Below, one piece after another: positions 59,706 through 63,400 of a stretch of 64,000 nt of DNA (the stretch's first letter is position 1; every line of letters begins with the position of its first letter). A program made the translations under genes and the position numbers. The DNA lies in assembly GCA_964234715.1 (NCBI GenBank), contig OZ174280.1; one strand, written 5' to 3'. This DNA comes from Podarcis melisellensis. Its lineage: Eukaryota. The notes under the pieces are model-generated. The model was not told the origin of the DNA, did not search any database, and saw only the letters and a list, made by a program, of their open reading frames with translations.

Positions 59706-60347
59706 ACTTCCCAGTCAGCTGGATGTCCCCAAACAGCAGGATATGGAGCAGGGCTTTGAATGAAGAGTGTAATGGGCCAGCAGCCCTTAGAAACAAAATA
59801 TTGTGTGTGTGTTTTTCCTTTTTCAATAAAAGCTTAAAACGCTTGGAAGGCAGAAATCTCTTTCTAGTACCAAATTCTGTACAACTTCAAAGCATGAGGG
59901 AAATCAATCGAATGCACACAGGCTTGGATATAGTCTACTGCTTTTGTTTATAATATTTCTAACCCACTCTTCATCACAATGGATCCCAGAGTGGGGTGAA
60001 AACGAACATTCATATTGATAGAATAGTTCTGAGCAGGCAGCTGAGAAATGTAATTATTAATTAGCTTGAGAGAAAGCAAGTTTAATACAGATAGAGGAGC
60101 TCACATTCTGATATACACAGAGCAAGTTAAGGCACCTTTGCAATCTCACCTGCAGATGGCTGAGCAAGAAACCAGCCTTTGATGTAGCACACTGTAACCT
60201 CATAGGTTGCAACATTCTTGAGCAGTGATCAGCTGTGCATATTTTCATGTTCCTGTGAACAGACAGGATAGACGTTCATATCATTGTCTTGAATAATTGT
60301 GCCATTTTGTGTCTCGTTCATCCTAGGAGAATACCTTCTCCTTTGCA

Positions 60348-60475
60348 CTGTTACGTGCTGTCAAACTGTCATGCATGAACATTGTGATCAAGGATGTCTT
60401 CCCAACACCTTGCTCCCCCAGGAAGACCAGTTTGAATTTCTGTTGTGGGTTCCCAAACTCTTCTCCTGTAGACAA
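60348..60475 (-). pseudogene. RAB6A: Processed, truncated RAB6A retrocopy (codons 1-43)
   Basis: The minus strand reads (TTG)[36 protein letters not shown][1-nt deletion]FDST*Q, against RAB6[44 protein letters not shown]. The ATG is lost, there is a frameshift and a stop, and there is no intron at the recalled exon 1/2 junction. Confidence 0.9.
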
Positions 60476-63400
60476 AGTGCCTAGCTCCAGTGTGGGCTGG
60501 AATTGAAACATACCACTGATTTTTCTGTTTGATATTCAGTGTGTGTTCTTCCCTATCTCCTCCTTTCTTTTATTAATTCTCCATCCTCTGAATCCCCCTT
60601 TGCATAGGTGTTGCCTAAGCATTTATAAAACATGGTTTGATTGTATTACTTTACTTGGGCCTGCGCCTCTGCTCTCACTGCTTGCCAGCCTTGTCTACAT
60701 GTCACCCCTCCAAATCCCCAGCCCTCTTCCACTTTACACCTCAACCCCGCAAACCTCACCCAAAGCCTCTTCCCTTTACACTTCACCACTGGTAGGGTGA
60801 AATGAAGTAAATGAAGAGGAGAAAGTCTTTTCTCACCTTAGCACTCCTGCCCTGCTGCAAATTTCCTTTTAATTGTCCCACCACTGTCACTCAGAGAGAG
60901 AAAAAGAAATTGCATTTTAAAATGCAGGCTTTTTCTCTCCTTCCCGCAGCAACAGCCTCCCAGCAGAACAGCAGGCAGGCAAGAGGGGAAGGCAGACCAA
61001 GCAAGCAGCATGGGTGGCCCAAGTGAGCCGCACAGCAGCAGAAAGGTCAGTGTTGGACATTTGGCTCTGCTGCTGCTTCCTGCCTCATTGTCCTCCAATG
61101 CTGGACCAAAACTGTGGTTGCTGGGCAACTGCCCTGCCCTGCCCTGGCTGTTTCTCTGTGACTTGTCTGTCCACAACCCACACCACTTGCCTGGACCACC
61201 TGCCACCCGTGTCACTCACCTGCCTGTCTGGGCTGCCTGCCTGCTGTTCCGTCATCACTCTGCAGTTGGTCACACCAACTGCAGTGTGACAACATTATTA
61301 CAATCTTAATACATACCAAGAAAAACTGAAGTTCAATAAAACACAATGACACACATTTTGAAAATGCCATTGTTGGGAATGGAAGTGGGCAGTGATTGAG
61401 ATAGTGGCAGTACATTTTGTGAACTGGAGGAAGCAGAATTGAGGGGAGGGGGAGTTTCCAAAGCAGGGCTGTGGACATGTACAGACCTGTGGCTCTCTTG
61501 ATTACTTCTATGGGACATCATGTCTTTGCAGCAGTTTCAGGTATTTCTTCCTACAATAGCTTTTGCTGCTGGCTGGTGCCTTAGTAGCCGTGGATCTCAC
61601 TTGTTTTGAAGAGCTTGTTTCTGCGTTTTGCTGCCAAACTCATTTGCTACAGAGCAAGTTGCAGCAAAGAGCTCCTCTGTCCAGACAGTTCAGTAGTATG
61701 AGATCACTTGCCTGCCTGGAGTGGGGTGGATGCGAATCCTTGTGAGCCTTCCTTCAGAACCCGAGCATGTTGCTTTGGAAGGCAAAGAGATGAGTAAATG
61801 AGATGTGCACCATAAATCTGCTTGCTTTGTAAGATGCACTTTAGGTAAATGCACTCTTTGCAACAATTTAAGTAACTCTGCTTGATGCAAGAAACTTAGA
61901 AATTGATTACACTGATGATCATGCTGCTTCTCTGGCTGGTTTTTGAGGAAGCTTATCTCAGTATACAGGTATTGCTTATCTTAACAGGGAGGGTTACAGG
62001 AGTCTGAGAATTATGGTTGAAAGGGTTCAGCTGGTGGAAGGGGGGGGGGCAAGTATTGCCCTGAAGCTTTGGGAGGTCATTTTTCCTGATTTGGTTTGAG
62101 TCTCTTGGCTTGTGCTGTCTCATCAGAGGCTCTGGAGCCCAGCCACAGCATTTCACAAAGACATTTCTATGTCCTATTTCCACTAGGATCATTCACTACA
62201 GGAGGAACATACTATTTTCACATGTGTTTCTCCTTGTTACTGTTAATTCCTTTATTGCTAACAGTAGCAATATGTTGTTTCTAAAGCTGGTGTCCAGAGC
62301 TAGCATATGTACCTACATAATGTAACATATCAAACTCCCAGGTTAGTGTGTATAGGATTGCAGCCTTAGATAGTCTGCAGTTTGAAGAGGGGGGTTGTTT
62401 CTGTAGTTCTCGGGGGGGGGGCGGAGAGAAAAAGAGCTACAATTCTTTGTGTGAGAGAGGTGTTTGTGGAAGAAAGCAGTAGATACACTTGGGGGTCGAG
62501 ATAGTGCCAAATCTCGTGTGTGTGCTTGCATGTGTTAATAATCCATAGTTTGTCATCACAGTTCCCTTACTCTTTCCTCCTTCCTGTCCCCCCATCAGTT
62601 AAGGTTTAAGGACGCTATTGACCACGTAAGTACCATTTGTTAGAGTGTTTGCTTGGATCAGATGGGTCTGAGGATCATTTTGTGAAATCTGTGTGCATAG
62701 TGCTGTCAAAACACCCCTGTCAATCCTCAGATGGTTCTAGGGAGTTGCTCTGTGGAGCTTCCACCAGCCACAAATCCTGAGCAAATTGGCATTTAGATTG
62801 CTGCTAAATGCAGAAAAGCAATTGACATTTTTCATAATCTGTATTTCCAGCTTGTTGCAATGCAATTTCAGGCAGATGCGGGGGGAGCAGCCCACTTTCT
62901 ACAGTCTTTGGTCCAGCTCGTTACATGGCAGAGTCAGATCTGTAATCTTTAAACCTCATTGATCCCAGTCGTGAAAAATACCCTGTTCTCTCAGCTGTGA
63001 CCTTTGGTTGAAACAGAAGCTGTAATAAGAACACAGTCACATTCAAACAGTTAAATTCAATTTTTCCAAGTAATTTTGAGATATAAATTTGGAGGAACAA
63101 GCTTGAAAATTACCTTTGGAGAAAGAGAGATTAAGTTACATACCCTGCTGTGGCTTCCCTCGTCTCTTAGCAGAAGGACTTTGCTTAGAAGGGGTTTGCA
63201 GCGACAGCCCTATGTATGGTATCTCTCATTCCACCTTCTTTCTTTCCTCTCTCCCCCTAACTTGCTTTGTTCTAGTGGCATGCTCTTCCCTGTGTGAGAA
63301 TTACTCTCCTGTGTGGACTGTGGTGATGACTACATCTTTTCGTAGCCTTTGTGTTGTGTATTTGAGTATCTCCCTCTATATCAATTTATTGCCATTGATT

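Follow-up and report, generated by a model that had tools for sequence, protein, structure and literature searches.

A dead, spliced RAB6A retrocopy in a Podarcis genome ends at the exon 2 border and hints at a lost short transcript

The stretch of Podarcis melisellensis DNA analyzed here (contig OZ174280.1 of assembly GCA_964234715.1, 64 kb in length and referred to as the window) carries a retrocopy of the 5′ coding end of RAB6A on its minus strand. The 128 nucleotides (nt) between 60475 and 60348 correspond to the first 43 codons of RAB6A. In a phmmer search of PDB, their translation matched residues 1–39 of human RAB6A (E 1e-13). The top matches were RAB6A chains with E values of 1e-13 to 4e-13 and alignments starting at residue 1, and from Pfam only the start of the Ras/Roc P-loop was recovered. 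The copy is followed by 285 nt (60347–60063, minus strand) that do not resemble RAB6 and that we call the 3′ segment. An earlier note on this DNA, made from the sequence alone, had described RAB6A homology of this length, reaching the Gln codon of NTYQ and lying antisense to its host gene. Both observations stand. The host gene is recognizable from an exon at 54189–54452 encoding an FN3 domain of a LAR-family receptor phosphatase, and since this exon is on the plus strand, the retrocopy is antisense to the gene. We see no sign that the retrocopy affects its host. The features of the locus are collected in Table 1.

Our results show that the copy was made from spliced RNA. We compared it, one exon at a time, with nine parental RAB6A loci of sauropsids, which we infer to be seven bird-like loci, one viper and one second squamate; MRPL48 lies upstream in all nine, and PLEKHB1 downstream in eight. 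In these loci, the corresponding 129 nt consist of a 70-nt coding part of exon 1 and a 59-nt exon 2, separated by an intron of 29–39 kb with gt..ag borders, and exon 2 ends in ...TAC CAG/gtaa (here and below, the slash marks the splice border). Hence, the statement in the earlier note that the two exons total 129 nt and end at TYQ was correct. In the retrocopy, exon 1 directly abuts exon 2 at 60406/60405, with no intron between them. Because the two exons are contiguous here and 29–39 kb apart in all nine parents, the element is a spliced, RNA-derived copy of RAB6A.

The homology to RAB6A stops at CAG, the last base of which is the last base of exon 2 at the donor site. With about 20% divergence, the position of this end relative to the exon border is uncertain by about 3 nt. 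The position of the intron itself is general: more than 30 predicted RAB6 proteins in protein libraries diverge directly after NTYQ (that is, after Q43), often with a V, which is what is obtained when the GT of an intron is read through.

Table 1. Features of the RAB6A retrocopy, its surroundings and a candidate relative of its 3′ segment (positions in the window unless stated otherwise)
Feature	Position	Strand	Evidence or remark
RAB6A exon 1, coding part, 70 nt	60406..60475	-	nhmmer with squamate exon 1, E 8e-07; alignment to nine parental loci
RAB6A exon 2, 58 of 59 nt	60348..60405	-	nhmmer with squamate exon 2, E 3e-08, positions 1-58
Octamer TGCAAAGG, first letters past exon 2	60340..60347	-	one of three minus-strand copies within 470 nt
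Remainder of the non-RAB6 3′ segment, single copy	60063..60339	-	depth flat at 80% likeness or more; motif scan
AATTAATAA, weak candidate target-site duplication or tail	60054..60062	-	18 nt after ATTAAA; same 9-mer at 60570-60578
Second, partial copy of the junction (U)	60578..60636	-	~32 nt like the 3′ end of exon 2, TGCAAAGG at 60597-60604, ~19 nt similar to the beginning of the 3′ segment
Third TGCAAAGG, directly after GCAGGTGAGAT	60135..60142	-	context compared with the junction, 15/19 matches, p ~0.085
~100 nt between U and the start codon position	60476..60577	-	candidate 5′ untranslated region of the template, by position alone
Conserved bird element with TATTAAA	L020-L027, ~7300-8100	RAB6A strand	seven bird loci; core GAATGTGAGCTCCT...TATCTGTATTAAA

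Judging from its sequence, the parental paralogue is RAB6A and not RAB6B. The N-terminus of the retrocopy has the length of RAB6A, whereas squamate RAB6B proteins start with MSAPGGAGGEFGNP and are four residues longer. In addition, exon 2 of the retrocopy is 83–85% identical to squamate RAB6A versus 75–80% to squamate RAB6B.

The retrocopy is dead. Its start codon has changed from ATG to TTG, codon 42 is TAA (60353–60351), and a 1-nt deletion near 60362 shifts the reading frame. The base that is lost near 60362 is still present in L001, a 1216-nt contig of another sequencing run that is 97% identical to the window over 59913–61123, and in DNA contigs of organism D (run X7). Hence, the ancestral copy was exactly 129 nt long and the frameshift is private to this genome. 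The element must also be ancient, since it differs from its parents at 25 of the 120 sites that are invariant in all nine of them (about 21%; eight of the 25 are at CpG). The relatives that share it differ from the window by only 1–5%. Neither L001 nor L019 represents an empty site, as both contain the element. In organism F, a close relative sequenced at 3–6x depth (run X21), the contigs stop at 60000 and resume at 60548. No joint across the hole (60001–60547) is among the joints listed, and a hole alone proves nothing; it may be a deletion allele, low depth or an effect of filtering.

What follows exon 2 is single-copy DNA. Depth is flat across 59760–61199 in the DNA contigs of organisms A and D at a likeness of at least 80%. 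Neither blastn nor nhmmer found further copies of the region in the rest of the window, and Rfam and Pfam gave no matches to the 3′ segment. It is thus not a young, abundant transposable element; it may be an old repeat of less than 80% likeness. The earlier note had proposed that a transposable element at this place would make the breakpoint a coincidence, an objection that falls for young repeats and may hold for old ones. A motif scan of the 3′ segment shows one poly(A) hexamer, the ATTAAA at 60086–60081, with the A/T-rich AATTAATAATTA starting 18 nt after it, just as the earlier note had seen. The same scan shows one strong 5′-splice-site-like motif, CAG/GTGAGA at 60150/60149.

Several origins of the 3′ segment can be set aside. 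A decayed exon 3 behind the junction looked plausible by eye, but when each of the parental exons 3–8 was locally aligned to 60347–59720, all scored at chance. It is also not a plain read-through into intron 2, because CAG is followed by TGCAAAGG instead of GT and the sequence is unlike the intron 2 starts of all seven birds and two squamates. An L2-type (ATT)n tail was considered and rejected as well, the tails of short interspersed elements (SINEs) at 4357–4446, 22280–22369 and 36162–36224 being unlike the 3′ end of the segment. The sequences at 4250–4450 (plus strand) and 36160–36360 (minus strand) belong to one SINE family with long (ATT)n ends and share a 3′ region, ...CCCAGCC...GGCTGGGGA...GGGGTA.AAATAA....

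Within the 3′ segment, runs X1 and X7 have an additional short contig in which 60180 is joined to 60318, so that 137 nt are skipped; it covers the stretches 60154–60180 and 60318–60347. Its depth is 35.9 versus 45.6 in organism A and 111.5 versus 96.3 in organism D. It has the ancestral GG at 60333–60334 and ends at 60347/8, which is exactly the RAB6 junction. This contig may come from a second, related locus or reflect a structural variant.

The junction between exon 2 and the 3′ segment is present twice. The octamer TGCAAAGG occurs seven times in the window, counting both strands. Upstream of the main copy, about 32 nt preceding a second minus-strand octamer align to the 3′ part of parental exon 2 (local alignment, empirical p ~0.004), and the whole of this second copy, U, aligns colinearly with 60385–60312 (p ~0.004); these statistics are post hoc and moderate. 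The two junction copies are 257 nt apart. U has kept the parental CAACACCTA where the main copy has CAGCACGTA, so the two copies decayed independently from an early common sequence. It follows that the junction predates most of the decay, and that exon 2 was already joined to foreign sequence at the time of the duplication. This fits a junction that was already present in the template. Two other explanations of the repeat were rejected. First, TGCAAAGG is not an 8-nt target-site duplication around a bare exon 1–2 insert, because the repeat runs past the octamer on both sides, into exon 2 on one and into the 3′ segment on the other. Second, rolling-circle copying of an approximately 257-nt circular RNA does not account for the locus, the last 250 nt of the 3′ segment having no recurrence one period upstream. 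Apart from these copies, a SINE stretch at 56906–56952 (minus strand), CAGTTCGAAAGCACGTCAAAGTGCAA, matches the decayed exon 2 end and the junction at 22 of 26 positions (nhmmer E 0.46), which we take as chance. The sequence between U and the start codon position (60476–60577) has no similarity to the GC-rich 5′ untranslated regions of bird or snake RAB6A.

How could a retrocopy of this shape arise? In target-primed reverse transcription, it is the 3′ end that is preserved and the 5′ end that is lost (review PMC5470649); the earlier note had said the same of copies made by long interspersed elements (LINEs). For a copy to consist of 5′ exons alone, its template must hence have ended a short way past exon 2, or the rest must have been lost later; a true 3′ end downstream of exon 2 is the simplest route. 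The explanation we favor, which in our judgment is about evenly poised between being right and being wrong, is that the element is a retrocopy of a RAB6A transcript whose non-canonical last exon had been spliced onto exon 2. The template would have held only exons 1 and 2 of RAB6A. Instead of using exon 3, the donor of exon 2 would have been joined to a non-canonical exon further downstream; this could have been an alternative or cryptic last exon of RAB6A itself, or it could have belonged to another transcription unit. The ATTAAA would be the poly(A) signal at which this exon ended. The RNA would then have been reverse-transcribed and inserted, in antisense, into an intron of the LAR-family receptor phosphatase gene. 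During integration or close to it, another short piece that spans the junction of exon 2 and foreign sequence would have been added just upstream, and the whole element would afterward have decayed neutrally. U would be accounted for if the reverse transcriptase jumped to a second molecule of the same RNA, and equally if the 5′ junction underwent templated repair. The exact border needs no further assumption if the exon 2 donor was spliced in this way, and the poly(A) signal agrees with it. This is our best reading, unproven as it is; both the presence of the 285 nt in the RNA and their origin are inferred.

A number of results speak against this explanation. The source of the 285 nt was not found in the RAB6A loci of the viper, the second squamate and the seven birds, apart from a weak bird hit, nor in squamate RAB6B. 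No short RAB6 product with a similar tail is annotated among the predicted RAB6 products in the protein libraries. Short products of the type of P0028, which came up as candidates, were rejected as genes of marine eukaryotes with an intron at the same position. A poly(A) tail is absent: ATTAAA is followed by no run of A, just by AATTAATAATTA. Of three candidate target-site duplications, none is convincing at about 20% divergence. One is the pair of AATTAATAA 9-mers, with an empirical p of 0.028 for this geometry, although a perfect pair is unexpected in an element about 20% diverged. Another is a 13/17 repeat at 60487–60503 and 59986–60002 (null 0.25), and the last is an 11/14 repeat at 60644–60657 and 60055–60068, of which about 0.5 such matches are estimated by chance. 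Given the age of the element, the earlier statement that no duplication could be identified thus holds in substance. In a 3′-biased single-cell RNA run of a close relative, a 6% sample has no reads on 59760–61199, which says little. Finally, the junction could have been duplicated at the DNA level after another event had joined exon 2 to the 3′ segment.

The search for the source used blastn and nhmmer and covered RAB6 loci only, namely RAB6A loci with 10 kb flanks and two squamate RAB6B loci. A match may have become undetectable, given about 20% decay of the one sequence and neutral drift of the other. The weak bird hit concerns the last 80–100 nt of the 3′ segment (60150–60075, including ATTAAA), which weakly match a conserved element 2–2.7 kb upstream of the bird RAB6A start codon. 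In six loci the E values are 0.013–0.28 and in the remaining one 15, compared with 0.38 for the best-scoring of 40 shuffles. When a profile of the bird element was run against the whole window, the top match fell at 60075–60150 (E 0.014). The element was not found in the two squamate RAB6A loci. As a source of the 3′ segment it is a lead only, the bird loci being one orthologous sample, the snakes being without the element, and the search having been confined to RAB6 loci. The inference of the earlier note, a short RAB6A isoform or a chimeric transcript, is hence upheld in that the copy is spliced, ends at the border of exons 2 and 3, continues into sequence that is neither exons 3–8 nor the start of intron 2 of birds or snakes nor a repeat at a likeness of at least 80%, and has its junction duplicated; the match to a source that it called for did not appear.

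One could also argue that the element began as a longer, ordinary processed pseudogene of RAB6A that was later cut by a deletion or rearrangement. The break would then fall at the border of exons 2 and 3 by chance, and 60063–60347 would be host intron or unrelated DNA. The age of the element suits such a history, because old pseudogenes are often fragmentary and this one is about 21% diverged. So do the border placed within about 3 nt only and the failure to find a poly(A) tail, a target-site duplication or a source of the 3′ segment. Nevertheless, we consider a later cut unlikely. For a transcript of a few kb with seven exon junctions, a break has a chance of about 1–2% to fall within 3 nt of any of them, and no remnant of exons 3–8 lies downstream. 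Moreover, with two independently decayed copies of the junction, the cut would have to have come very early and to have been followed by a duplication.

Alternatively, reverse transcription could have begun on an unrelated polyadenylated RNA, represented by the 3′ segment, and jumped to a RAB6A RNA that ended at exon 2, such as a free exon 1–2 intermediate. Chimeric retrocopies are treated in the review cited above (PMC5470649). U itself has the look of a sequence made by a further template jump, and this event may therefore have involved jumping. End-to-end jumping is a property of non-long terminal repeat (non-LTR) reverse transcriptases. If U is a second jump, however, its template already had exon 2 joined to TGCAAAGG, which places the junction in the RNA and not at the jump. 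The junction also has no microhomology with RAB6A exon 3 or intron 2, and we know of no precedent for the capture of an intermediate held by the spliceosome. Such a chimera therefore strikes us as improbable.

We give a similarly small chance to the idea that RAB6A exons 1–2 and the 3′ segment together form an old, diverged, low-copy mobile family that captured the 5′ end of RAB6A, with U as the remnant of a neighboring or nested copy. Single-copy depth at a likeness of at least 80% in two genomes argues against it, and so does the lack of another copy in the window. A protein word search and a full search gave only the orthologous copy besides true RAB6 genes. In its favor are the two junction copies 257 nt apart and the contig joining 60180 to 60318 (X1, X7), which is present at roughly single-copy depth and hints at another related locus.

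Least probable of all is that the retrocopy is the fossil of a splicing intermediate, made when a reverse transcriptase that had started on another RNA jumped onto the free exon 1–exon 2 piece left by the first catalytic step of intron 2 removal, although such a template would end the homology at the donor site without any alternative exon.

Two side observations concern the surroundings of the retrocopy. First, the FN3 exon at 54189–54452 matches PTPRD and PTPRF structures almost equally well (87 vs 81 bits, matching domain), so this exon alone does not decide which LAR-family paralogue the host gene is. Second, the plus strand at 59166–59705 holds the 3′ end of a CR1-type LINE. By our own reading, a 154-amino-acid open reading frame there resembles the C-terminus of ORF2 (LEYCVQFW...), with the ORF2 tail at 59166–59630. 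The CR1 end lies at about 59702–59705, tail to tail with the retrocopy. It is of extremely high copy number in three genomes and is found in RNA reads; depth over 59400–59705 is 10^5–10^6, versus the flat single-copy depth at 59760–61199.

In kind, the element is an ordinary dead retrocopy; its shape is unusual. Like processed pseudogenes made by LINEs, it is an intronless copy of an intron-bearing parent at an unrelated locus without a promoter of its own, and here it has decayed by loss of the start codon, by a stop codon and by a frameshift. Whereas in ordinary retrocopies the mRNA 3′ end is kept and the 5′ end lost (PMC5470649), this one keeps the 5′ coding end and has no exons 3–8, no RAB6A 3′ untranslated region and no recognizable poly(A) tail. 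Another retrocopy of the same parental gene invites comparison, at least in part: both arose by RNA-based duplication of RAB6A. This is RAB6C, a primate retrogene of RAB6A that is nearly full-length, expressed and protein-coding. The lizard copy is, by contrast, a dead 43-codon fragment and an independent event.

The locus also resembles template-switch chimeras (of the U6-L1 type, or the partial retrocopies mediated by long terminal repeat (LTR) elements; PMC5131818) in that two unrelated sequences lie head to tail in one insertion. Partial coding copies are common among such chimeras, and extra pieces occur at the 5′ junction. Here, however, a splice donor marks the junction, a position not predicted by template switching, and the flanks are single-copy DNA and not LTR or LINE sequence. 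A further likeness in structure is to retrocopies of alternatively or intronically polyadenylated short isoforms and to partially processed retrogenes, in which normally spliced first exons are followed by non-canonical sequence with its own poly(A) signal. In contrast to retrocopies that retain an intron, the sequence after exon 2 has no GT at its start and is unlike the nine sauropsid intron 2 starts.

That the copy stops at the border of exon 2 is a hint of a lost short RAB6A transcript and no proof of one. If a RAB6A transcript with a non-canonical last exon was indeed the template, then the fragment records a short RNA from the germ line of an ancestral lizard, made of exons 1 and 2 and a foreign last exon. 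The predicted RAB6 products that we checked include no transcript of this kind. Retrocopies would in that case be an archive of past splice forms. A retrocopy that keeps its 5′ end is the reverse of the usual pattern, and the duplicated junction bears on how the 5′ ends of such inserts are sealed.

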